In this document: one piece after another, positions 3,304 through 35,695 of the stretch | Layout: each line of letters opens with the position of its first letter | Position numbering within the stretch: the stretch's first letter is position 1 | From: Fonticula alba ATCC 38817 | Lineage: Eukaryota > Protista > Nucleariida | Assembly (NCBI GenBank): GCA_000388065.2 | Contig: KB932203.1 | Reading direction: 5' to 3' (one strand) | DNA length: 35,924 nucleotides | Translations under genes and position numbers: made by a program | Notes under the pieces: model-generated | Told to the model about the DNA's origin: nothing | What the model saw: only the letters and a program-made list of their open reading frames with translations | The model's database searches: none

Positions 3304-4858
3304 CATCCTTCTCTTTTTGGGTGCTCGTCATTTTGCCCTTCGGGGGAGAGGACCAGCCATCATTGGTGCATGTTCGTGCTGTGTGGATCTGCTGCATATG
3401 TGTGTCTGTATGTGCATGTGTTGCGGCAAGAGTATGTGCGCCCGCGCTTGTGACGAGGGGCACGGACGGGAGAGAGAGGGCGAGGGGGGCCAGGGGGGAG
3501 GGCATTGCGCCCGCCCGGCCCCGCCTTCCGGGGAGCAGGGGTCTGTTTTGGGTCTCGTGTTTTTTTCTTTTGGGCGAAGTTGCAGGGTGTGGGGGGTGGG
3601 GGGGGGGGGGGGACGGGGCGGGGCGGGGTAGGCGAGCCCCCCGCCCCCAGACGCGCCGGCGCCGGCCCGCAATGAGGGAGATGATGATGCGGAATCCAAT
3701 CATCATGACTGGTGGGCGAAGGGCCACTTGTCGAGGGAGGCCGGCGCCGTGGGCACTGTGGTGGGGGGCGGGGCGGGGGTCCTGGTGTGCCACGTAGGGG
3801 GCGCGCGCATCATGACACACCCCGGGCGGCCGGGGGGGGGGGGGCCAACCACCACCATACCCGTATGCGTAACATGCAACCGGCGAGGGGCGGAAGCCGN
3901 NNNNNNNNNNNNNNNNNNNNNNNNNNNNNNNNNNNNNNNNNNNNNNNNNNNNNNNNNNNNNNNNNNNNNNNNNNNNNNCGGGGGAGGAGGGACCCGAGCC
4001 ACGGAGGACGCGTCGTGCTCCCCGACGGAAGAGACGCCGCGCGTTCGCCGCGTCCGGCAGGACACACGAGCCTATTCGCCCTCCTCCCTCGGGCGCGCCG
4101 CGCCTGTCTCGCTGCCTCCTGCGAAGCATCCCGCTTCCCCCCCGGGGGTGGGGGGGGGGGGGCCTGGCAGACACAACCACCGGGAGGGCGGGGGGCGGAC
4201 CAAGCCGGCGCCGGCACCGGCAGCCCCCGCGCAGGGGTGCCGAGCCGTCTCCGTTGCCAAGAGGGCGCCGCGCGGCTCCGGGACGTGCCCCACCCGATGC
4301 CAAGCGTGCCTGAACGCCGGAAGCCGACGTCCACCGGGCGGGGCCACCCGCCGGCGCGTATTTCCTTCCCTCTCGGTCTGCTGGCCCTGCGGAGCCGGAC
4401 CGCGGCCGGCCGGGCCCTTCCGCGCCCAGTGCCAGGTGACATAAGTGGCGCAGCCCGGGCGGGTGCGCGGACCTCGGAGCGGGGGAGCCCCTCCCGAGCC
4501 CCGGGGCCGACCGCCGCATTCGCCGGGCGGATGAAAAGAGCTGGGCAAGGGGCAGCGCGCCGCCGCCGCCGCCGCCGCCGCCGCCGTTCCGCCCTGCCGG
4601 GGAAAGGGCCACCTGAGCTTGCCCCTGGGTTGGAGCATGCCGCTGGCTCTCGCTTGGGGAGGCGGGGGGGGGGGGCATGTTTGGGGGACTTCTTTTCCAG
4701 CGGCGTGGGGACGGCAGCGGGGCATGTGCATCCGTGCATCTCATATGTCCTGCGGCCCCGGTGATGTCGTTGCTGCCGTCGCCGCCGTTTCTGCCGCTGG
4801 CACCGCGGGGCGGAGGCCAGGGCGGGCCGCCTGCATTGCAACACGGGGGGTTGTCCGC

Positions 4859-4907: not shown

Positions 4908-7403
4908 TGAGCCAGCCGCACGCCGCCTGGCCAGGGGGGCGGGGGGGGGGGGGGGGCAGAAAAAAACAGGGCTCGCGGCGACCAGATTTGGGCGGCCAGT
5001 TGCGCGCGTACCGGCCCATCCGCGCGCAGGCAACACGCCTGGTGCGGATCGCCGCCCGGGGTTCGCCCGAACACCCGGCCAGGACCGGGCCGCGCCCGGC
5101 ACACACAGGGCACTTTCACGCAGGGCCCCCGTTTTCCGCCGACGGTCGTCCGTCTCCGGGGGGCCCCGGGGGACGGTTGAGCCGTTCCTCGCCTTGCCGG
5201 CCGCCCATGTGCCGGCGCGCCCACACCCGGCCCCCCCCCCCCCCCCGGCCGGCGCACGAGCCGACAGGACAATGGGGCAGGGCCAGGCCACGCGACCGGG
5301 GCGCGACGCGAGGGCGCTGCCCAACGCACAGGCGGCACACCCCATCCGGCCGCCGGGCTCCCGTCGCGTCAAGGGAGGCCTAGGCCGCGGCGGGCGCGGC
5401 CCGGCCGACGGCGCGGGCGAGCCAGGGCGTGCGCACATCCATGTCCGCATGTCCGTCCGCATGTCGGCCTTGCATGTCCGCCGGTGTCTGTGTGTGTGTG
5501 TGTGCGCATGTGTCCGGAGGCGCGCGCACGCGCGCGCGTGTCTTCCCGCGCCCACGGCCACCGCGTTCGCCGACACAAACACCACCGCCGAAAGGGGAGC
5601 GACCGATGGCTCGCCCGTGCGCGCGCGCGCGCGCGCGCGTGCCCTCACCCCGGGCCCGGCCAGGCGATTCCGGCCCGGGCGAGCAGCGGGCCCATATTCT
5701 TTGAAATAATACTGGCCATTATATTTACCCGCTTTTCCGTGCACATGCACGCATTCGCAAGTGCTATTGTGCATATTCTTCGGGTGTTTCGTCCGGTCTT
5801 CTCCACTGGCGAGAGGGGGCCGGCCGGCTGCGCGAACAGCGCCCCTCCCCGGACGCACACTCCCTTCGTACTGGCTTTTTTTGGGGGGGGGGGGGTCCCG
5901 CCCCGTGCCCACAGCCCGTCTGTCTGTCTCCGCCCCCCGCCAGCCCCTCCAAGGCCCCTCCTCTTCGAGCGATCTCTCCCCCCCGGGCCGCCGTGCCCGC
6001 GCCGGCGCCCCCGTTCCCCCCCGCCCCGCCCGCGGACGCCAGTCTCAAAATGGATGCCTGCTCAGAGGGAGGGGGGGGGGGGAGCGGGGGCTTCTTCCAT
6101 GCACGGGGTTTCCCGGAAGGGTCCGCGCCACGAAGGGGTTCCGGCGCGCCGGCCCGTGTGCATCCTGCAGTGATTGCAAGTCCCGCACGGCGCGGGGAGA
6201 CCCACGACCGGCGGCGGGACCCGCACGGACGCCCGCCCTCCCCCCCTCCCCTGCCCCGCCCGGGTGCGGGATACAATCCGTCGGCAGGGCACGCCGCGCG
6301 TCGCCCATCGCACGTCTGCGCGCCCCGGACAAACGCACTCGTCTGCGCACGCGCGCACGCGCGCCGGCGCCCCGCAGCCCCGCATGGCCGCGCTTGTGGT
6401 GAGACCGGATTGGCCGCCCGGCTGCGGCAAAGCATCCCCCGGTGCAAAATACCCGCCGGGGGGGGGGGGGGGCACCGGTCAGTCGCTCCCTCTACCGCAC
6501 CCTTCCGCTCGGCCGCGCGTCCTCCGGCCGGGTGGTCGGCCGGCTGGGTGGCGAACCCCTGTTCCCACACTGCTTCGTCCCCCATGGGTGCGGCCTCCCG
6601 GCCGCCGGGCGCAGAAAAGGTGCNNNNNNNNNNNNNNNNNNNNNNNNNNNNNNNNNNNNNNNNNNNNNNNNNNNNNNNNNNNNNNNNNNNNNNNNNNNNN
6701 NNNNNNNNNNNNNNNNNNNNNNNNNNNNNNNNNNNNNNNNNNNNNNNNNNNNNNNNNNNNNNNNNNNNNNNNNNNNNNNNNNNNNNNNNNNNNNNNNNNN
6801 NNNNNNNNNNNNNNNNNNNNNNNNNNNNNNNNNNNNNNNNNNNNNNNNNNNNNNNNNNNNNNNNNNNNNNNNNNNNNNNNNNNNNNNNNNNNNNNNNNNN
6901 NNNNNNNNNNNNNNNNNNNNNNNNNNNNNNNNNNNNNNNNNNNNNNNNNNNNNNNNNNNNNNNNNNNNNNNNNNNNNNNNNNNNNNNNNNNNNNNNNNNN
7001 NNNNNNNNNNNNNNNNNNNNNNNNNNNNNNNNNNNNNNNNNNNNNNNNNNNNNNNNNNNNNNNNNNNNNNNNNNNNNNNNNNNNNNNNNNNNNNNNNNNN
7101 NNNNNNNNNNNNNNNNNNNNNNNNNNNNNNNNNNNNNNNNNNNNNNNNNNNNNNNNNNNNNNNNNNNNNNNNNNNNNNNNNNNNNNNNNNNNNNNNNNNN
7201 NNNNNNNNNNNNNNNNNNNNNNNNNNNNNNNNNNNNNNNNNNNNNNNNNNNNNNNNNNNNNNNNNNNNNNNNNNNNNNNNNNNNNNNNNNNNNNNNNNNN
7301 NNNNNNNNNNNNNNNNNNNNNNNNNNNNNNNNNNNNNNNNNNNNNNNNNNNNNNNNNNNNNNNNNNNNNNNNNNNNNNNNNNNNNNNNNNNNNNNNNCCA
7401 GAC

Positions 7404-10400
7404 ATGGGCGACGAGTTCCCCCACTCGGACACGGACTGCGGCCACTCGGCCGACCGCTCGGCCACCGACACTTTTGACCTGTCAGAGCTGACCACCACCG
7501 CCCTGTCGCTTGCCGGCGACAGCTTCGGCGGGCCGGACCTCGTTGCCACAGCCATGCCCGGCTTCGCCGTGGCCGATGACTCGCTGGTGGACGATTGGAT
7601 GGCCGTCGGCCAGCCCGACGGTCACCCGGCCGCCGTGCCCCCCGGCCACACGCTACTCACGGTGTTCGCCTGCTTCGCCGGGAATGAGTGTGCCTCGGCC
7701 CGGCCGGCCTCCAACCATGGGCCGGCCCCGCCCAGCCCGCCGATCTCGCGCCCGGCCACGCGCCCCGTGTCCCAGCACTGTGCCGACCAGGAGGCAGCCC
7801 CGGCCCCGGCCCCGGCCCCGACCCCGGTCTCGGCCCCGCCCCCTGGTACCGGGCACATCCCCGTCTTCCGGAGCTCCATCACCCTGTGTGTGCCGGTGGA
7901 AAGCAACCTGGCCGACGTGCTGCGCCGGGCCTGCGCCGCCCTCTCCATCTGGGACGACCATAATTACTATCTGGTCGGGTCGACGCGCGAGCTGGCCCCA
8001 GGCAAGGGTGGCCCCGCCGGGCCGGCTCCCCTGCGCCCATGTGCCGCGCACACGCACTTCCCCGACTCCGTGGTTGTGGACGCCCTCTGCCTGAACTCCA
8101 ACTGCGCGGAGATCCTGGCCGAGGCCTGCCCGGCCCCGGCCGCCAGTGACTTCCCCATCTTCTGTTGTGAGGTGGGCCCGGCACCGGGGTCGGCCGCGGC
8201 TGCGGCCATATTGGCGGCCTCCGGTGCCACGGCCGCCCTCACGACCACGACCACGGCCACGGCCACGGCCACGGTCGCCCCAATGCCTGGCCACCCTGCC
8301 GACACCGGCCCCGGTGGCTGGGATCAATCGCCGCCGCGGTCGCCCATCGAGGAGACCGGCTCCCCGCGGCCGTCGCCGGCGTCGCACATGCTGGGCCAAC
8401 TGGCATCCAAGCGCTTTTCCGGGCCCTTTTCCGGGCTCGGCCGCAGTGGCGGGGGCCTCCCGGGCGTGGGTCCGGCCGCCGGGGGGTTTGGCTCTCGCCT
8501 GCCCCACCGCCACCATCGCCACCACCACCATCACCACCACCATCACCTGTCGACGCAGAGCTCCACCACCGGGCCCGCCGGGGCTGTCATCCCCTCGCCG
8601 CCGGTGTCCTCCTCCTCCTCTTCCTCCTGCTCGTCCAGCCACCCAGGGTCCTCGTCCTCGGACACGGCCAGCGATTCGGGATATCCCTCATCGCCGCGGC
8701 GCGGGCTCGGCTCCGACGCCGGGCCCCGGTGGTTCGACAGTGGAAGCCTCGGCCGCAGTCGCCGTGCCAAGGAGGCCCCCTACGAGGGCCCCGGTCTCCC
8801 GCCCTTCACCCGGGTGGCTGACCTTCAGACCGTGCGTTTCCCCTCTCCCTTGTAGCGGTCCTCTTCCGGGGGAGGGGGGCATCCCACCTCGCATCTGCGC
8901 GTGCCCTGCCGCACGCATCCACCTCCCCTGGTCCATGTTGTCCTAACTTCCACCCTCCCGCTGCCCCTCGCACGCACACGCACACGCACACGCACACGCA
9001 CACGCACACGCACACGCACACGCACACGCACACACACACACACACACACACGCACGCGCACACGCCTCCACCCAGTCCAATCTCTGTCTCTTGCCGGACC
9101 TCTTCGCCACGCGCGACATCTTCACCATCCAGCTGGCCCGCGGCGAGTCCATGACCCCGGCCCTGCTGGCATCGCCCTTTGCCGCCGGGGGGATGACCAC
9201 ATCCTCCGACAGCACCGGGGCGCCGCCCGGGGCCGGACACATCTCCGACGGCAGTGCCAGCGACTCGCTCTCGCCCTCCTGGGCGGCCATCGGCCTCGGG
9301 GACGGCCTGACCAGTGCCAATGCCGGATTCCAATTCCAGCCGGCCGGTCACTCGAAGACCATGCCGGCCCCGACGGGCCCCGGCTCCGTGATAACCGCCA
9401 TCACCACCCCCGGGCTGCCGGCCACCGTCACCAGCTCCAGCTCCACCTCCGAGGGCTCCTACCAAACGGGGCCCATCCCCTCCACCGACAGCGGGACATA
9501 CGGCGGCTCGGAGGGCTCCTTCGCCGATGCCGAGGACATGGACCTCGAAAGCATGGACCTGGTGTCCTTCTCTTCGACCTGCTCCGGGTCGGACCGCATC
9601 CCCCCCCTGCCGGAGGTGGTCCCGGCCCCGGCCCCGGCCCCGGCTCCGGCCCCGGCCCCGGCCCCGGCCGGCCGGTCGAAGAAACTCCTACGCGGCTTCA
9701 AATCCACCATCAAGAGCCTCTCCACCATGGGACTGCAGGTGACCGGCGGCGGGGGCCCCCGGAGCCCGAGCCTGGCTACGGCCCCCGGCGGCGGGCCCGG
9801 CTCCTCGGACGCCTCCACCAGCGAGCCCGATGACGCGGGGCCCGGCTCGCCCCTGTCTCCGACGGCCACGATGGTGGCCTTCCGGGCCTCGTCGGCGGAT
9901 GGCCCCGGCCCCGGGGCCGGGCCCAAGTCTCCCTGGCACTCGGCCGGGGCCCTGGGCGCCGCGCCGGTGCCGGCCAATGCGGCCATGCTCTCGCCTGCCT
10001 ACCTCTCCTGCGAGGTGGCTTGCAATGCCGGGCTTGGGTCGTGCGATGCGCCGCACATCCATGGTCCCCATGCTGCCGGGTCTTCGCACATTCTTTCGCA
10101 ATTCCTGACCCTGCCCTCGAGCAATGCCGCCTCCACCACCGGGGGCACATCCGCCGGGGCTCCGGGCCCGGCGGCCAGCCGTGCTCCCAGTGGGGCTCCC
10201 GGGCCGGCCCCCTTCCTCGGCAGCGCCGCCGGGCCTGCCAGCGCCTGCGGACCCAGCGCCGCCAGTGGCCTTGTGTCCTCCGCCTCGAGCATGTCCCTGT
10301 CGTCCATCTTCACCTCGGGGTCCTCCTCGGCCCCGGTGGCCGGGCTCTTTTCCTCATCTGCCTCCTCCTCCTCCTCCTCCTCCTCCTCCTCGTCATCCGA

Positions 10401-12517
10401 CCATGATGGCCGCGGTGGGATCCTTTCTCCCGGATCCGGGTCCGGGTCCAGCACGCCCTTCCTCCGGGCGGACGTCATTTCCTCGGCCAATCGGTTCGTC
10501 ACTCGGCCCAAGCACCTGCGCAAGGACAGTGTCTACTTGTCGGTCATCTTCTTCGACCGCCATATGAAGGTCTTGTCGCACAGCCAGTCCGGGCACCTGC
10601 CGTCGGTGGAGATCTGCCGGAACTACGGCCCACTGGAGGCCGACTCGGATGACTTCGTGTGGGCCTTCCAGCGGTCGCTGGACTACGAGAACACCGTGCA
10701 CGACATGTGCACCTTCCGGCCAGACTCCTCGGCGCAGTACTCCTCGGCCTATCTGGTGCGTACTCCCTGCCACCCCCTCTCTCCTTTGGCTCTCTTTTAG
10801 CGAGTCGCTGTGGCAGTTGTGGCAGTTGTGGCAGCTGTGGCAGTTGTGGCAGTTGTGGCAGTTGTGGCTGCTGCCGCCACCGCTGTCACCGCTGCCACCG
10901 CCGCCACCGCCGCCACCGCCCCCACCGCCGCCACCACCGGCATAGACCGCGGTTGCTGCCTTTCTTGTTTTCATCCTTCCCTCGCCGGAGCTGACACTTC
11001 CCCTCCCCCCCCCCTCCCTCGATGCACCAGACCGACCCCTCTGTGGCGTCGTCCTCCTTCCGCCAGGGATTCCTCCGGGCCGTGGAGCATTTCCTCAGCT
11101 TCGACATTTCCATCTTCGGGTACATGTACGACGCGCCGCTGGTGGTCAGCGACCGACGCGTGACACACTTGATGGTCCTGCGCCCGGTGTCAGCCGCATC
11201 GCCCATCCGCTCGCGGCGGCTGGACTCCGTCATCCAGGGCAGCGACGTGCAGGAAATCAGCCAGCCGGCCCCGGCCCCGGGGCCCGGGGCTCCGGCCCCC
11301 GGGAAGCTCGGCCTCTCCTGGCGCCCGCTGTCGGATCTGATGCTTACCTACCCCGGCGGGCCGTCCTCCGACCACCTGTGGATCAATCTGCCGGCCATCG
11401 TGGCGGCCCGGCGCCCGGCCGTTCCGTTGCCCTGTCTGTCACGCTTCCTTTCGGAGGGCGCCGCCCGGGCGCGGTCCTTCACGCACATGGCCGCCGGCCC
11501 GGTGGTGACCGACACTTCCTCGGCCGCCGCCGATGAGGACGCCCTCATGCGCACTTCCAGCAGCGGGTGTCTCTTCATGCTGACCAGCAGCAGCTCCTCC
11601 GGGGACTTGGTGTCCACCGTGTCCGGGGAGCTGGGCCTGGCGCACCAGGCCGCCGCCTTCACCGAGCCGCGCAGCGATCTCTGCCCGCCGGCCGGTGGTG
11701 TGGCCCCCGGCGCCGGCGGCGCCTCCCTGCGCGGTGGTCCTCTCCTGGGGGCCGGCGGCGGTGGCGGCGGCGGCGGTCCTGGGTCCCTGTCGGGCCCCGG
11801 GCCGGCCACCAGCTGGGCCCTCTCGCCGGTGGTTCTGTCCCTGTCATGCTCGGCCAACTTGGACCAGGCCCGCTTGTGGGAGGCCTCCTCCTGGGCCGAT
11901 GAGCGCCTGCTGTCGGCCGGGGCGGTGGCCGATGACCGGCCGCGCCGGCCGCGCAAGCTCGCCGCCCCGGTGGCCACCCCTGGGCTGTATGTGGCCGTGC
12001 TCCACATCGACAGCAGCCTCAACATCCAAATTGGCGTGCAAATGACCAATGGCTTCCTGCCGCCGATGGCGCGCGTGCGCGAGTCCGGCCTCCTGACCAA
12101 CGCCGAGTGGGCCCTCATCCGGCGGTCCTGCGGCACCGACACACTGGCCGTGGACCCGGGGTCGGCGCATGCCGGCCTCCAGCGGCAGCTACTCCTGGCC
12201 CTGGACAGCCTCGAGGCCCAAACCGGCCTGCACCTCCTGCATCAGTTCCTGTTTACCGAGGAGCCGGTGCGCCTCGGCGGTCCCGGGTCCACGGCCACCG
12301 TGGTTCTCTTTGTCATGCCCATGAGCCAGGGCGGTCGTGGAGGAGGGGGCCCTGGCGGTGGTGGTGGCGCTGGCGGCCGCGGCGGCGGCCCCGGGTCCGG
12401 GTCCCTGCTGCCCCTCGGCGGTGGGCTCGGTGCCGGCCCCGGCGCCGATCACCACCTCGGTGCCAGTGGCAAGGGCTCCGGTCGCAAGTCCTCTCTCAAG
12501 CAGGTGCTCACCCGCTT

Positions 12518-12548
<31 letters not shown>

Positions 12549-14063
12549 AACAGCAATCGCCCCTCGCCCGGTAGCCTCTCCTCCGGCATCGCGGGCGATG
12601 ACGATGGCAGCCTGGCCACCGGTGTGCCGCTGTCCGGCGGCGTGGGGCGCGGCTCCGGCCCGGGGTTCGGCTCTCTGCCGCCCTCCTCCGGGATCATCCT
12701 CAAGCCGCTGCTCCTGACCGACACCCTATACAAGCACATTTTCTTCCGGGCCCGGACGGCGGCCATGCGCCGGCGCACGCGCGACATCAGTGCCCGACTG
12801 GCCTACCTCCACCGGCTGGTGCCGCAGGTGGACGTGGAGCTGGACCTCCTGACGTCGGCCTCGACCCAGCTGATCTTCAGCCAGGCGGCTGCGGCGGCGG
12901 CCGCCGCCTCGGCAAGTGGCCCCCCGGACGGGGAGCCTGCCACCGTGGCGGCTCCCCCCCGGGCGGCCGGCAACCCCTTTGCCATGAGCATTGACTTCTT
13001 GCGGCAGCTGCGTGCGCGCCTGTTGGGGCTCATTTCGCACTTGGAGGCCCGGCGCGAGGCCGACCGGACCGGCTGGCGCCAGCTCGCCTGGTCCTTGAAT
13101 GTCATCGAGTGGGAGCGGCAGCGCGCGTTCACCCGGCTGACGGTCGGCCTGCGCCATGATTACTCCCTCGGCGGCGGGTCGGCCGACCTGCCGCTGGTGG
13201 CTGGTCCCTCGCCGGGCAGCGGCCCGTTGACGCGGTCCCTGAGCACTTCCGGCGCGAGTCCGCTCTCCAATGGCACGCCCTTGTCCGGTGGCGGGGATGC
13301 CGGCGCCGGCGGTGCCGGCCTCCTCTCCGTGGACACGGCGGCCGCCCCGCGGGTGGGCAGCCTCTCCGGCGGCCGGACCTGGGTGTCGCCCTCGGTGCCC
13401 ACCTCGCCGCAGCGTGGTGCTGCTGCCTGGTCGGGGACGGCCACCGCGCCGCGCTTCTCCCGGCCCCTGCCGCCGGCGCCGCCGGCCCCGGGGACCGTTC
13501 GCCTGCCGGGCAGCCTCAGTCCCAGCAGCGGGTTCTCCTCCGGCGGCGTCACCGGCAGCCCGGAGGACACCGAGGCGGTTCTGCAATCGGTCAGCGCCAC
13601 CTTCGGCCTGCGCACGGGCGACCTGCCGCCGGGGGGTGACCGGGTGCACCTGTCGCCGGAGGCGGCCCTGTCGCACAGCTCCCTCGAGGGTGGGGGGGCT
13701 CTCTTCCGGTCGACCTCCGATGCGGGGTGCATCTCGGCCATTCCGCCGGCGGTCGCCGAGCCGGACGCCGGCCGGCTGTCACCGCTGCCCCAGTCCCCGC
13801 TCGAGGCGGAGGAGGGTGCCCAGTGTGGCGGCCGTGCGCCGCTTGCTCCGCGCCGCCCGGCCGGCAGCGCCCCCAGCCGCCTGCCCATGTCGCGGTCCGT
13901 GCCGTTGGAGATGCACCGGCTGTCCTTGCGTGAGCCATGCATCGCCGCCTCCGTTGGTGGTGCTGGTGCTGGCCCTGGGTCTGGCGTCATCGCATCCACC
14001 GGGGCAGGGGCTGGGCCCCTGCTGGGTGGCATGCCGGAGGAGGACGAGCAGGCGGACCAGTAA
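7404..14063 (+). CDS. ANKFN1/WAKE/Banderuola-like protein, ~2046 aa; exons 7404-8831, 9076-10755, 11031-14063 (start could lie further upstream, in or beyond the 6624-7397 gap)
   Basis: Three long ORFs are joined by phase-0 GTGCGT..CAG introns. Five ordered blocks resemble the ANKFN1 C-terminal core as I recall it: SSANRFVTRPKHLRKDSVYLSVIFF..LPSVEI..DDFVW; PGLYVAVLHIDSSLNIQIGV..LPPMARVRE..LTNAEWALI; QRQLLLAL..LFTEEPVRLG..VVLFVMP; LKPLLL..HIFF..VELDLL; FLRQLR..WRQLAWSLNVIEWER. The CDS itself is near certain; the family call is from memory. Confidence 0.7.
8969..9063. repeat. (CGCACA)n then (CA)n microsatellite in intron 1 of the ANKFN1-like gene
   Basis: Read directly between donor 8832 and acceptor 9075. 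Confidence 0.9.
10809..10868. repeat. 9-bp tandem repeat (TGTGGCAGT) x~6.7 in intron 2 of the ANKFN1-like gene, followed by a degenerate (CCACCG/CCGCCA)n tract
   Basis: Units start at 10809, 10818, 10827 (variant), 10836, 10845, 10854 and 10863 (partial). Confidence 0.9.
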
Positions 14064-14608: not shown

Positions 14609-16441
14609 TTGGTGCCTTGTGCGCGGGTGAGTGCGGGATGGCACTGTTTCTGGGACATCAGAACGTCACGTCACATGCCCCGCTCCGGCATGACCCAGAC
14701 TTTGCTCGTTGGCGTGCAATGCTTGTCGGGTGGCTCATCAGAGTGGGGGACTCAGGGGGAGGGGGGCGTGTGCGGCGGCTGAAAGTGTGTCCCCGCCCCT
14801 TGCCACCTCCACAACAAGCGGGCCGCGCCCGGCCGAAGGTGGCAAGCCTCCGCGGTAGGCGGCGAGGGGGCGGCCTTGCGCGCGGCCAGATCGCCTGGCC
14901 GAGACCCCGGCCGGGGTCCTCCTGAACGCAATCAGATGCTCGCATCAGGCCTCAGCCCCGTCCTCCCCCCCCCCCCCCCCCCCCCGCCCCCTTCTCCGCC
15001 GCCAGTCAGGCGAAGGGGGCGCGCATTGCCTTTCAGGCGGGGCCGGGGCTCGCGGGGCCGGGCCCGGGGCGCCACACACTGGTGCGCCCGCCGGCCGGTG
15101 ATGCGTTTCGACATTCTTCACGCTCCGGCTCCTGGCGGGAGAGCCTTCTTCTCGCCGGGCCCCTGCGGCCAGGGCTGGCCCGGGGCGGCGGCCGGCCGTC
15201 GAGCGGACAAGTCTTCCCCTGGGCCGGCTGCTGGGCCCGCCCCTGGCAAGCCCAATCTCCAGTATGCAGGTGCATCTGTGTCGGTGTGTGCGTACATACG
15301 TGTTTCAGGTCCGATGGAGCGTGCTTCCCGAATGTACCCCGTTCCACCGCCCCTTTGGGTGCCCCCCCCCCCCCGCCCCCCCGGTGAAACCGCCCCTGCC
15401 GTTGCTAGCTGCGCAGGAGATGGAGACGGCGGTCTCAGCGGTGATGTGTTTGGTCGAGGGATTTCCCCTCGCCACGCCAGAAGCACGGTCTGCCCGCCGG
15501 GGGGGGGGGGGCGAGAACCGGACGACGCGTTGCAGGAGAGCCGGGAAAAGGCCGGGGACAATCCCCTTGCCGTTGTTTATTTTCCGCGGTGGCGGGTCTG
15601 AATGACGGTGCGGCGGTGGTTTCTCCCACGAATTCCTTCCGCCAGGAGGTATGTTTGCCGCTCGCTCCCCCCCTCCCCCCCCGTTCCGTCCCCTCGCCCA
15701 GCCTTCAGCGGGGGGGTGGGGGCTGAGGCGGCCGGGGGCGATCTCACGCGCCCGGGGCCGGACCCCGGAAAGCGAGCCCCCAAGGGACTTGCCTGATTGA
15801 ACCAACTTCCCCCCTCCCCCGGGGGGGGACGGGGGGGAATGCGCGGGGCTGTCTCCCGAGGACCTGCACTAATGCCGGGCGCCAGAAACTCCAAGCTCAC
15901 ACGGCCCTGGGGCGCGGCGCGGCCAGGCACACTCACACAAGCACTTGCAGACACAGAGCCGGCCGTGCCATCAAAACTGGCCCCAGGCCGGACGGCGGCG
16001 CTGGGGCACACGCGTTGACACTCCTCTCCCCCCCCCCCCCTCCTCCCTCGCCTCTTCGCCCGCCTTGCCGGCCCCTCCCTCCNNNNNNNNNNNNNNNNNN
16101 NNNNNNNNNNNNNNNNNNNNNNNNNNNNNNNNNNNNNNNNNNNNNNNNNNNNNNNNNNNNNNNNNNNNNNNNNNNNNNNNNNNNNNNNNNNNNNNNNNNN
16201 NNNNNNNNNNNNNNNNNNNNNNNNNNNNNNNNNNNNNNNNNNNNNNNNNNNNNNNNNNNNNNNNNNNNNNNNNNNNNNNNNNNNNNNNNNNNNNNNNNNN
16301 NNNNNNNNNNNNNNNNNNNNNNNNNNNNNNNNNNNNNNNNNNNNNNNNNNNNNNNNNNNNNNNNNNNNNNNNNNNNNNNNNNNNNNNNNNNNNNNNNNNN
16401 NNNNNNNNNNNNNNNNNNNNNNNNNNNNNNNNCCCCCCCCG

Positions 16442-18588: not shown

Positions 18589-19628
18589 NNNNNNNNNNNN
18601 NNNNNNNNNNNNNNNNNNNNNNNNNNNNNNNNNNNNNNNNNNNNNNNNNNNNNNNNNNNNNNNNNNNNNNNNNNNNNNNNNNNNNNNNNNNNNNNNNNNN
18701 NNNNNNNNNNNNNNNNNNNNNNNNNNNNNNNNNNNNNNNNNNNNNNNNNNNNNNNNNNNNNNNNNNNNNNNNNNNNNNNNNNNNNNNNNNNNNNNNNNNN
18801 NNNNNNNNNNNNNNNNNNNNNNNNNNNNNNNNNNNNNNNNNNNNNNNNNNNNNNNNNNNNNNNNNNNNNNNNNNNNNNNNNNNNNNNNNNNNNNNNNNNN
18901 NNNNNNNNNNNNNNNNNNNNNNNNNNNNNNNNNNNNNNNNNNNNNNNNNNNNNNNNNNNNNNNNNNNNNNNNNNNNNNNNNNNNNNNNNNNNNNNNNNNN
19001 NNNNNNNNNNNNNNNNNNNNNNNNNNNNNNNNNNNNNNNNNNNCCCCCCCCCCCTGACGCGCCCGCCAGGGCGACACAACGCCGGACATACTGGACACGC
19101 TGCGTGAGAAAATATCCGGGCCCGAGTGCCAATGCTTTGGCGCACACCAGGATCTGGTGCAGCAGAATGCCCGGGCGCCGGCCCGGGCCAAGACACCTCC
19201 GTGCCCGCTGCCGGCGGGACATTTCATTCGCCGGTGTGGGAAGAGAGCCGCCCATCCGGCCAAGGGCCGGGGGCAGGGGCGGCGGCCACCGGTCGCGCGT
19301 ACGCCGACCCCGCCGCGGGTCGGCCTGCGAACCGCCGACCAGGGATAACCGGCGGGTGGGACGCACGCGCGTACGAGCAGCCCCCTGCGGGGGCCGTACG
19401 CGCACGGACACCTCGCAAGGACACACGTACATACACACACAGGCACATCCCCCCCGCCCCCGCTGTGGAGTATTCATATGGCGCCCCAATGCACAGGGGC
19501 TGGGAGATCGCGAGAACAGTCACTTTCCACCACACACCTCTCCCCGCTGCCGCCCCCCCCCCCNNNNNNNNNNNNCCCCCCGCCCCGCCTCGCCTCGCCT
19601 CGCCTCGTCTGACCACCTCCCCCTTGCC

Positions 19629-30370: not shown

Positions 30371-30649
30371 AGCCTGGCTCGCCCCNNNNNNNNNNNNNNN
30401 NNNNNNNNNNNNNNNNNNNNNNNNNNNNNNNNNNNNNNNNNNNNNNNNNNNNNNNNNNNNNNNNNNNNNNNNNNNNNNNNNNNNNNNNNNNNNNNNNNNN
30501 NNNNNNNNNNNNNNNNNNNNNNNNNNNNNNNNNNNNNNNNNNNNNNNNNNNNNNNNNNNNNNNNNNNNNNNNNNNNNNNNNNNNCCCCCCCCCGCCCACC
30601 GCCTTCCACCACACCGAGGACGTCCTGCTGCGGCTTCGCGCGCCGCCAG

Positions 30650-33600: not shown

Positions 33601-35695
33601 GCGCATACACGCGCACACGNNNNNNNNNNNNNNNNNNNNNNNNNNNNNNNNNNNNNNNNNNNNNNNNNNNNNNNNNNNNNNNNNNNNNNNNNNNNNNNNN
33701 NNNNNNNNNNNNNNNNNNNNNNNNNNNNNNNNNNNNNNNNNNNNNNNNNNNNNNNNNNNNTAGAGAGGGTGATGCGCTCCCGCACGGGATCGAACCGCGG
33801 ACCTTGGGATTAACAGTCCCACGCTCTACCTACTGAGCCACAGGAGCACGGGGGAGCCTCCCCCACCTGCCCTCTTATGTGGATCCCCTGCCTTTTTTCC
33901 GCCTCCAGCCACTTGGGGCCGTGTCACACGCCCCGACACGCGTGCACGCACGCCGACGGCCGCGCACACACACATACAAACAAAAGCATGTGCTGGTCGA
34001 TGCAGGTATGCACACATGCATACAGATGTACGCATGCAAATGTACGCATACAGATGTACGCATACAGATGTACGCATGCAGATGTACGCATGCAGATGTA
34101 CGCATACAGACACATACATATACAGATGCACGCATACAGACACACGCATTCGTGCCCACACCCACGCACACCTACACCCATGCACGCCGAGACGCACCTG
34201 CAAATGGACGGCAAGACTTGGCGCTCAATCAGGCGCAGATCGCCAACATGGTAGAAGGACAGGTGCTCCGACAGAAGGACCCCGTGCGCCAGTGTCCCGG
34301 CCGCCGACCAGATCCGGTCCACTCGGGAGGAGCCCGACGCGGACTCGAGGCCGCTGTCACCACCCCCGGCCACCGTCACACCCCCGCGCGTCAGGGCCCA
34401 CCCGGAAGACCGGCCAGCCAACTCCTGGAAGGCGGCCGCCGCCCCGCGTCGAATGCTGACCGACACATCGAACAGCGCCGCTGCCAGGAGCTCGCGTGCC
34501 AGGCGCCCATGCAACAGCCACAGTAGCGCTGCCGAGCCGCCGGACCGGTCCCCGGTGCCCGGCTGACCATCAACCGGGTGCTCGAAGGCCACATACGAAG
34601 GGTGCGGATGTCGCGAGAGGGCTGACCCGAGGACCGAGCGGGGAGTAGAGGTGGATCCAACGACGTCAGCAAGAGGGACCCACAAAGAACCCCTCTTCCC
34701 AGCTGATGGGGACACGGGGAGGAGCAGGGAAGCGGAGAGGGGGAGAAAGAGAGAAAGAAAGAAAGAAGCAGAGGGAGAGGCAGAGCCGGTAGAGACAGCA
34801 GAGGAGCTGGAGTTGAAGCAGCAGGTGGACAGCGAAGGGGGCACGAGGGATCATCGGACCCGGGACACGCACCCCACGCCAAAAAGCAGGCCGTGTCGCG
34901 CACCGACACCACCAGACGCCGAAGCGCCGGCCGACTGGGCCCTGGCGGGAAGTGGTCCACCGTGAGGGTCAGCGCGTCGCAGGCTACCCCGGTTAGCCGG
35001 GCCAGCAGGGCCACCAGCTCTTCGGAGAGACCCGGCCCGCCGGGTGCCCCCTTGGACAGATCTCGCCGAGTGGCCTCGGCCACCGTAAACAGCACCCCGT
35101 GCAGGAGATTGGCATCGTGCGACCGGAGGAGCGTCTCGCGCCCGGGGACCCCGGCTGGCCCGGCCACCGCATCCAGCAGGTCGGCCACCAGGCGCAAGCG
35201 CACCACAGGCGCCAGGCGCGCCGACAGCACCGCCAGGCACTTGGCCGAGGTCATCCTCACCCCGGAGTCCTGCACACGCGAGACACCCGGCGCGAGGATG
35301 GGGGGTAGTGGGGGAGTGGGGGAGTGGGAAGAAAAACGGGATGGATTGTTTTGTCCGGGCCGGACCGGAGGAGGAGCGGGAGAAAAGGGGGCGTGAGCGA
35401 GAGAAGGCACCAGAATGTAGGGGCCCTGGCAAGTGGTGGCATAGGCGCCGATATCCGGAAGGGGCAGACCGCGCACCGAGTCGGCCAGATTCCGGAAGCA
35501 ATGTTGCAAACAGATGTTCGATGCCCATTGCGACACCTCGGCGAAGTCGGCCGCCTGGTACACGAAGGGCGAGGCTCCGTGGCTCGACACCGCGAAGGCG
35601 GCGGCGCCACGTGCCTCGACCGACAGCAAGTGACCAAAGGCAGTGTCGGCGGCCGGCGGCAGGAGGTGCACCGTGCACTGTGCGAGGACCTTGAG
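30650..35695 (-). CDS. TBCD: Tubulin-specific chaperone D (cofactor D), divergent, 5'-partial; exons 35695-35411, 35269-34873, 34621-34198, 33470-30650
   Basis: Motifs DSGVRMTSAKCLAVLSARL (cf. DTVVRWSAAKGIGRMAGRL), LHGVLFTVAEATRR, VRDTACFLAWALSR, ALFDVSVSIRRGAAAAFQELAGR, GDVGSWVRAAA and DTVDRVRLSA. Junctions are in frame (3927 nt). Confidence 0.88.
33775..33847 (-). tRNA. tRNA-Asn (GTT), identical to the copy at 3231-3303, inside a TBCD intron on the host strand
   Basis: Exact reverse complement of 3231-3303, lying within intron 34197-33471. Confidence 0.97.
34023..34140. repeat. 14-bp minisatellite (CAGATGTACGCATR) x6 plus degenerate copies in the TBCD intron
   Basis: Consecutive 14-nt units read from 34023. 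Confidence 0.9.

Follow-up and report, generated by a model that had tools for sequence, protein, structure and literature searches.

A very probable, highly diverged homologue of the ANKFN1 core in Fonticula alba and a predicted Nudix-like fold for the core of animals

Introduction

We analysed a stretch of 35,924 nucleotides from the slime mould Fonticula alba ATCC 38817, an amoeba-like organism related to fungi (assembly GCA_000388065.2, contig KB932203.1), hereafter the window, which carries a gene whose predicted protein resembles the conserved core of ANKFN1, a family also studied under the names Nmf9, wide awake and Banderuola. In mice, flies and fish, loss of ANKFN1 disturbs vestibular function, sleep, locomotion and asymmetric division, and the ANKFN1 papers that we consulted report no biochemical role for its conserved core. 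An earlier note on this DNA, made from the letters alone, had described five ordered conserved blocks on the + strand, had likened them to motifs of human ANKFN1, and had proposed on this basis that the core predates animals.

The locus and its gene structure

The conserved blocks lie on the + strand and are divided between two long open frames, one at 9091-10800 and the other at 11022-14063 (1013 amino acids). As predicted from the sequence, the stretch that holds them is part of a single-copy, multi-exon gene coding for a large, mostly low-complexity protein. The parts of this gene are the following:

7398..8831, + strand: upstream open frame, probable 5' coding exon; 465 amino acids, low complexity, starting directly after a run of N
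8832..9075, + strand: candidate intron 1; GTGCGT...CAG, phase 0, 244 nucleotides
9076..10755, + strand: exon A; 560 amino acids, 54% G/A/S/P and mostly low complexity, with block 1 near its 3' end
10756..11030, + strand: candidate intron 2; GTGCGT donor at a codon boundary, phase 0
11031 (or 11067)..14063, + strand: exon B; ~1010 amino acids, stop at 14061-14063, holding the rest of the core

The upstream frame stops at a codon boundary before the GTGCGT donor at 8832 and is probably the 5' coding exon of the same gene; we infer its join to exon A. For intron 2 there are two possible acceptors, the AG at 11029-11030, which is the first to follow an extended run of pyrimidines, and the CAG at 11065-11066. 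Both of them (intron ends at 11030 and 11066) preserve the reading frame, and the earlier one adds TDPSVASSSFRQ, which matches the FR.KLLQA element of the ANKFN1 family (P=0.041). A donor scan found donor-like hexamers at only two other places in the gene, both of them within coding motifs. The predicted protein would measure at least ~1,560 amino acids, or ~2,020 if the upstream frame is joined, and about half of the residues of the whole are G, A, S or P. In exon B, low-complexity inserts interrupt the core, and the exon ends in a low-complexity tail of ~310 amino acids. A paralogue search of the genome found no second copy, the genome searches covering the 31.3 Mb assembly with its 214 contigs.

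Both candidate introns contain simple repeats: a long CA-rich repeat in intron 1 (8950-9065) and, in intron 2 (10800-10935), ~7 copies of the 9-base unit GTGGCAGTT followed by a GCC-rich repeat.

The five ordered conserved blocks of the earlier note were found at their place on the + strand, spread over two exons, and the human ANKFN1 motifs that it had cited agree in pattern with the consensus of the ANKFN1 proteins that we fetched and with the sequences printed in the supplement of PMC9210315. The conserved segments, together with the insert that separates two of them, are the following:

10477..10692 (approximate), + strand: block 1, SSANRF..VYLSVIFF..LPSVEI..DDFVWAF..LDYEN, in the frame of ORF (open reading frame) 9091-10800
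~11037-11195, + strand: exon B start block, FR..FLRAVEHF../YMYDAPLVV..LMVLRPV
11976..12284, + strand: block 2, PGLYVAVLH..NAEWALIRR..LFTEEP
~12294-12326, + strand: VVLFVMP block, continuing domain 2
12327..12686, + strand: glycine-rich insert of ~120 amino acids within the second domain, where animals have ~25 residues
from 12687, + strand: GIILKPLLL.. block, where domain 2 resumes after the glycine-rich insert
13065..13130, + strand: block 5 (GWRQLAWSLNVIEWERQRAF; W..W block, GWRQLAWSLNVIEWERQ), weakly aligned at the place of the W..RW..D...AR element of the helical hairpin, non-motif domain 3

In terms of the ANKFN1 core, the first Nudix-like domain (called non-motif domain 1 in the literature) opens with the part represented by block 1 and closes with a helix-strand element carried by the start of exon B. 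Block 2 represents the beginning and middle of the second Nudix-like domain (non-motif domain 2). The peptide GLYVAVLH stands at the place of the animal GLYLGYLK. Its G, L and first Y, which vary little or not at all among 49 animal rows, are kept in Fonticula; the second Y and the K are not. The glycine-rich insert is probably coding, since no strong donor lies within it.

Profile comparisons with the animal core

All comparisons were made exon by exon rather than on a joined (spliced) protein. Animal sequences were obtained by scanning metagenome contigs with a degenerate DNA pattern, the back-translated peptide GLYLGYLK with PNVLP 16 residues downstream. The pattern gave 42 metagenome loci, and all 42 were animal ANKFN1 exons. 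One of them, L020, contains an intronless ORF of 1005 amino acids, a jellyfish-like ANKFN1 with weak Ank and fn3 matches. A word search with the L020 core yielded 194 proteins; the 120 listed were all animal, most of them named ANKFN1 by their source, and the closest to the L020 core among the matches listed was that of the jellyfish Rhopilema. Our alignment A2 comprises 60 rows, all of them animal ANKFN1 cores; A1 is a shallower alignment.

Vertebrate-type ANKFN1 exons were seen on five metagenome contigs (L008, L009, L023, L025 and L032), one of which is 101 kb long; these five were excluded from every alignment, comparison and search after the first listing.

The homology to the ANKFN1/WAKE/Banderuola core proposed in the earlier note was borne out by the profile tests. 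With the A2 profile, hmmsearch gave exon B 17.8 bits (P=4.8e-8), with a domain of 16.7 bits at block 2, and exon A 11.3 bits (P=4.5e-6), with a domain of 10.9 bits at positions 7-68 of the HMM (hidden Markov model). Exons B and A ranked first and second among the 299 six-frame ORFs of the window, the next one scoring -0.4 bits, and the maximum over 16,000 shuffled versions of the exons, local and global shuffles together, was 4.4 bits. The HMMER bias score was 0.0, and the two hmmsearch P values combine to 6.5e-12 by the method of Fisher.

Profile-profile alignment with hhalign against A2 matched the exon A block to columns 7-70 (probability 70.7%, P=3.8e-5), residues 304-406 of exon B to columns 188-294 (probability 87.2%, P=3.9e-6) and the C-terminal block to columns 393-413 (probability 0.9%, P=0.065). 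The column order of these three matches is the order of the blocks in the gene, and their Fisher combination is 3.4e-9. The shallower alignment A1 gave the same picture. When the first and second domains of the animal core (d1 and d2) were taken separately, hhalign matched block 1 to d1 with P=3e-4 and to d2 with P=0.24, and block 2 to d2 with P=8.9e-8 (probability 94.4%) and to d1 with P=0.015. Both hhalign and hmmsearch recovered non-motif domains 1 and 2 of the ANKFN1 orthology group in Fonticula, domain 1 matching d1 and not d2. We conclude from these sequence comparisons that the Fonticula protein is very probably a true, very diverged homologue of the ANKFN1 (Nmf9, wide awake, Banderuola) core.

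Observations that weigh against the homology

Several observations count against this conclusion. Pfam recognised no family in any of the three coding pieces (the upstream frame, exon A and exon B). The only match of a phmmer search with residues 1-420 of exon B against 1.84 billion representatives was spurious (P0001), and a word-index protein search with residues 296-420 of exon B returned none at E≤0.01 or at E≤10. Searching the genome in all six frames with A1 or A2 gave no candidate, a blank that is uninformative in such a search. The similarity to the animal protein is also low, with a sequence identity of ~20% over the blocks. BLASTP against L020 gave weak matches, for exon A at residues 438-510 (E=0.001), for exon B at residues 600-672 (E=1.2) and for the C-terminal block at residues 787-836 (E=0.096), which nonetheless stand in the correct order. 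Non-motif domain 3 is in the right place and order and is not significant alone (P=0.065), its hmmsearch domain being likewise weak (independent E-value 0.15). The small blocks taken alone (residues 1-60, 378-425 and 541-620 of exon B) were not significant, and they tended to match the copy of the element in the other domain. The locus had also been selected before any test was run; even so, the combined P of ~1e-11 corresponds to an expectation of ~1e-3 after a rough correction for ~1e4 genes and ~2.5e4 families. Furthermore, A2 is an animal-only alignment, the non-animal members being compared by eye alone, and the 5' end of the Fonticula gene is hidden by the run of N at 6624-7397.

Two other searches were likewise unproductive: a sequence search of the PDB gave glycine-linker noise only, and feature searches of the ESM Atlas gave no usable match, whether the query was the Fonticula block or the animal core. 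As the blind single-sequence searches were all blank, single-sequence methods see no relative of this protein. The spurious phmmer match is a predicted protein of 1600 amino acids with ~19 near-identical repeats of ~80 residues, whose score was summed from many weak stretches; it is unrelated.

The accessory domains of ANKFN1 were also looked for, and their absence belongs on the same side of the balance. Ankyrin repeats were not found by Pfam (E≤1) in exons A and B and the upstream frame, part of the 5' end possibly sitting in the N run just mentioned. The same scan gave weak fn3 matches in the animal ORFs L020 and L024, and it found neither fn3 nor RA in the three coding pieces, where the CRIB motif was not found either. 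The RA/CRIB module, which binds small GTPases and takes the form of a C-terminal RA in ancestral members and of an N-terminal CRIB in some unicellular ones, varies between lineages and is therefore not strictly defining for the ANKFN1 group. The predicted architecture is a core-only one, without ANK, FN3, RA and CRIB. This combination, in which the core blocks are present and ANK, FN3 and RA are not found, is that of the core-only type known in Holomycota from Mortierella.

A segment of the upstream frame (7800-8100, + strand), IPVFRSSITLCVPVESNLADVLRRACAAL.., has the look of the beginning of a ubiquitin-like or RA domain; hhalign against an RA profile gave only P=0.2, and we rejected this candidate.

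Predicted fold of the animal core

The earlier note had suggested an AlphaFold model and a Foldseek search. Both were run on the animal core only (L020:2003-3295), and it is there that Nudix-like matches were found. The AlphaFold2 model built from A2 had a pLDDT (predicted local distance difference test) of 90.4 and a pTM (predicted template modelling score) of 0.88; a first run on the shallow alignment A1 (pLDDT 58.8) was discarded. Residues 13-181 and 183-335 of the model have a common order of strands and helices and are followed by a long helical hairpin (336-405). The profiles of d1 and d2 match each other (P=3.2e-4 over 101 columns), which argues that the animal core arose by tandem duplication. 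Mapped onto this model, the blocks of Fonticula lie in the first strands and helix of domain 1, then in domain 2 and then in the hairpin, in the same order.

The top Foldseek matches in the PDB were nearly all Nudix proteins (MutT1, Dcp2, YmfB, NrtR, AraR), whose fold is an alpha/beta/alpha sandwich, with E values from 6e-3 upwards. On model residues 13-181, VIA-align, which works independently of Foldseek, gave NrtR (3gz5) a Z of 9.5 with an rmsd (root-mean-square deviation) of 3.0 over 120 residues, followed by MutT/Nudix (9.2), ADP-ribose pyrophosphatase (1viq, 9.1), AraR (5bs6, 9.0) and NUDT14 (8.9); these Z values are modest, the usual background being 7-8, and the model is that of an animal protein and not of the Fonticula one, both of which weaken the case for a Nudix-like fold. 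The likeness of domain 1 of the animal core to these Nudix regulators and hydrolases (Z 8.9-9.5, ~120 residues, rmsd 3.0-3.7) is one of shape only, seen on the animal model, without a box and without a match at the sequence level. The Nudix box GX5EX7REUXEEXGU, strict or relaxed (even REx2EE), was found in none of the 60 core sequences and not in the Fonticula exons, and Pfam gave no NUDIX match in the Fonticula exons or the animal ORFs. If the fold is Nudix-like, the absence of the box implies that it is non-catalytic. The model suggests that the animal core probably, although not certainly, comprises a tandem pair of Nudix-like alpha/beta domains that arose by an ancient duplication and lack a Nudix box, with a helical hairpin behind them. 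In our literature search no publication connected ANKFN1 or Banderuola with Nudix.

A shape search of the Atlas with the animal core model recovered ANKFN1 clusters at TM (template modelling) scores of 0.88-0.92, together with a mostly Basidiomycota cluster of proteins named "MHYT domain-containing protein" (~1018 amino acids), whose predicted shape matches the whole ANKFN1 core (TM 0.63 by the query, 342 residues). These fungal proteins differ in their N-terminal MHYT membrane domain, for which there was no match anywhere in the Fonticula genome. Judging from the model, the core fold may be more widespread in fungi, where it would be fused to a membrane sensor domain (MHYT).

Comparison with published non-animal relatives

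Homologues of Nmf9/ANKFN1 have been described in choanoflagellates and a filasterean as well as in almost all animals, together with one fungal copy, in Mortierella verticillata, which has the conserved non-motif domains only and for which the authors considered a horizontal transfer possible (Zhang et al., 2015; PMC4488434). The ANKFN1 group was later defined by ANK and FN3 motifs together with three conserved non-motif domains, and Trypanosoma cruzi as well as the two Mucoromycota Mortierella and Hesseltinella were listed as possible carriers of distant homologues (Ross et al., 2021; PMC9210315, Table S1). That the ANKFN1 core predates animals is thus in essentials already published; of the corresponding proposal in the earlier note, the presence of a core homologue in Fonticula stands and the novelty does not (PMC4488434, PMC9210315). 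The same note had held that its case would fail if the family were already known to be widespread outside animals, and this is partly so, with choanoflagellates, filastereans and Mortierella and possibly T. cruzi and Hesseltinella. The lineage is new and the kind of gene is known, non-animal relatives having been published before. Fonticula is absent from the supplements of Ross et al. (2021; PMC9210315), and our literature search found no paper naming both Fonticula and ANKFN1.

The nearest relative by eye, in the sequence printed in PMC9210315, is Mortierella, which has every Fonticula block in the same order. Mortierella IYLSVVLV / LPTV / PDFAWMF can be set against Fonticula VYLSVIFF / LPSV / DDFVWAF, and PGLYVGLYY / AEWDWIRS / WRMVSWT..NEW against PGLYVAVLH / AEWALIRRS / WRQLAWS..IEW. 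The two also have in common a core-only architecture in a holomycotan, and they differ in that the low-complexity inserts of Fonticula are much longer.

The GLY peptides in Table S1 of PMC9210315 are GFYVGFFL for T. cruzi and GLYVGLYY for Mortierella, with none for Hesseltinella, and GVYVAHVM, GLYLSVLV and GLYLASVF for the group of Capsaspora, Monosiga and Salpingoeca. GLYVAVLH of Fonticula fits such non-animal variants, for instance GLYVGLYY and GLYLSVLV. The unicellular holozoans Capsaspora, Monosiga and Salpingoeca resemble Fonticula in carrying the core with degenerate GLY peptides; they differ in having an FN3 match in all three cases and ANK2 in the two choanoflagellates (Table S1), neither of which was found in Fonticula, and some unicellular holozoans have an N-terminal CRIB or a C-terminal RA, also not found in Fonticula. 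With the animal ANKFN1, Fonticula has in common domain 1 (G.YL....LP.VE...DF.W), domain 2 (GLY...., ..EW.., ...V.FL...P) and, at a weak match, the W..RW element of the hairpin, ordered alike, whereas its inserts of more than 100 residues and its long low-complexity arms, as well as the lack of recognised ANK, FN3 and RA, set it apart.

Discussion

The main alternative to homology with ANKFN1 itself is that the relation holds at the domain level only. The Fonticula gene would then be a member of a sister family with the same tandem Nudix-like core, such as the fungal MHYT proteins, and not the counterpart of ANKFN1. The failure to find ANK and FN3 in Fonticula and the very low similarity to animal ANKFN1 would fit such a relation, and the MHYT cluster (TM 0.63 over 342 residues) shows the fold in another architecture. 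We nevertheless consider it unlikely: the Fonticula genome has no MHYT match, the domain order and the matches of each block to its own position equal those of ANKFN1, and the protein that looks closest by eye, the core-only one of Mortierella, was placed with ANKFN1 by the authors who described it. Horizontal transfer of the core from a holozoan into Fonticula or into holomycotans seems to us quite improbable. It would account for the patchy distribution outside Holozoa (one Mortierella, one Hesseltinella, one trypanosome), and the exhaustive phmmer search found no relative; yet the base composition, the style of the low-complexity regions and the GTGCGT introns are typical of the host genome, the divergence from animals is extreme, and the occurrence of the core-only form in a further holomycotan lineage, deeply separate from the first, is explained more simply by vertical descent with losses.

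That the locus is a decaying or unexpressed remnant is very improbable given exon frames that are open over 560 and ~1010 codons, two candidate introns that share a strong donor and phase 0, and an intact G-L-Y, even though the gene is known from genomic sequence alone, the core contains large inserts and the third conserved domain is weak. It could finally be argued that an extended open frame of biased composition, lying in GC-rich DNA, resembles the core by chance, given that about half of the protein is G/A/S/P, that long ORFs occur in many frames of the window and that the blind database searches were blank. None of the 16,000 shuffles and none of the 297 other ORFs of the window came near the scores, at a bias of 0.0, and three blocks match in order, each to the domain of its own position, which makes a chance resemblance extremely improbable.

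Under homology with the ANKFN1 core, each Fonticula block fits the domain of its own position best, so that, on the sequence evidence, the duplication within the core is older than the split of Fonticula and animals. The existence of a second, deeply separate holomycotan lineage with a core-only protein argues for vertical descent. Tentatively, and well short of calling it probable, we propose that the core is an ancient tandem pseudo-Nudix module which was duplicated by the time of the animal/fungal ancestor, was inherited vertically in Holomycota (Fonticula, Mucoromycota and perhaps the MHYT proteins), and serves, without catalysis, to bind either a nucleotide-like ligand or a partner protein.

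The way in which such a module might work is more speculative, and we regard the following mechanism as a whole as possible and rather doubtful. The core would bind a small ligand, perhaps in the manner of the Nudix-derived regulators NrtR and AraR, or else partner proteins; it would do so without catalytic activity and would sit in a long flexible scaffold. The protein that bears it would be a signalling or polarity adaptor with a part in cortical or polarity signalling. This role is suggested by the fusions with CRIB, RA and perhaps MHYT and by the roles of the fly protein, which in the work on Banderuola and wide awake is said to be cortical and receptor-linked, with Discs-large and receptors as reported partners.

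As non-animal homologues had been described before, the window itself brings a modest gain; what it adds is a second holomycotan lineage with the core-only form and a fold hypothesis for the core. A second holomycotan core-only carrier would weaken the published idea of horizontal transfer for the fungal copy, and would place the origin of the already-duplicated core in the opisthokont ancestor or earlier. A concrete and testable idea of what the core binds follows from the predicted pseudo-Nudix fold. If the core is indeed an ancient pseudo-Nudix module, the biochemical role of wide awake, Banderuola and Nmf9 could most simply be sought in core-only organisms, for example Fonticula or Mortierella.

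Composition of the window

The window has a GC (guanine plus cytosine) content of ~65-75% and contains several runs of N, which are assembly gaps or withheld stretches. In addition to the run at 6624-7397 that precedes the upstream frame, they lie at 489-523, 3900-3978, 16083-16432, 18589-19043, 19564-19575, 30386-30584 and 33620-33760. The apparent AT-rich islands in the composition profile are due to these runs.

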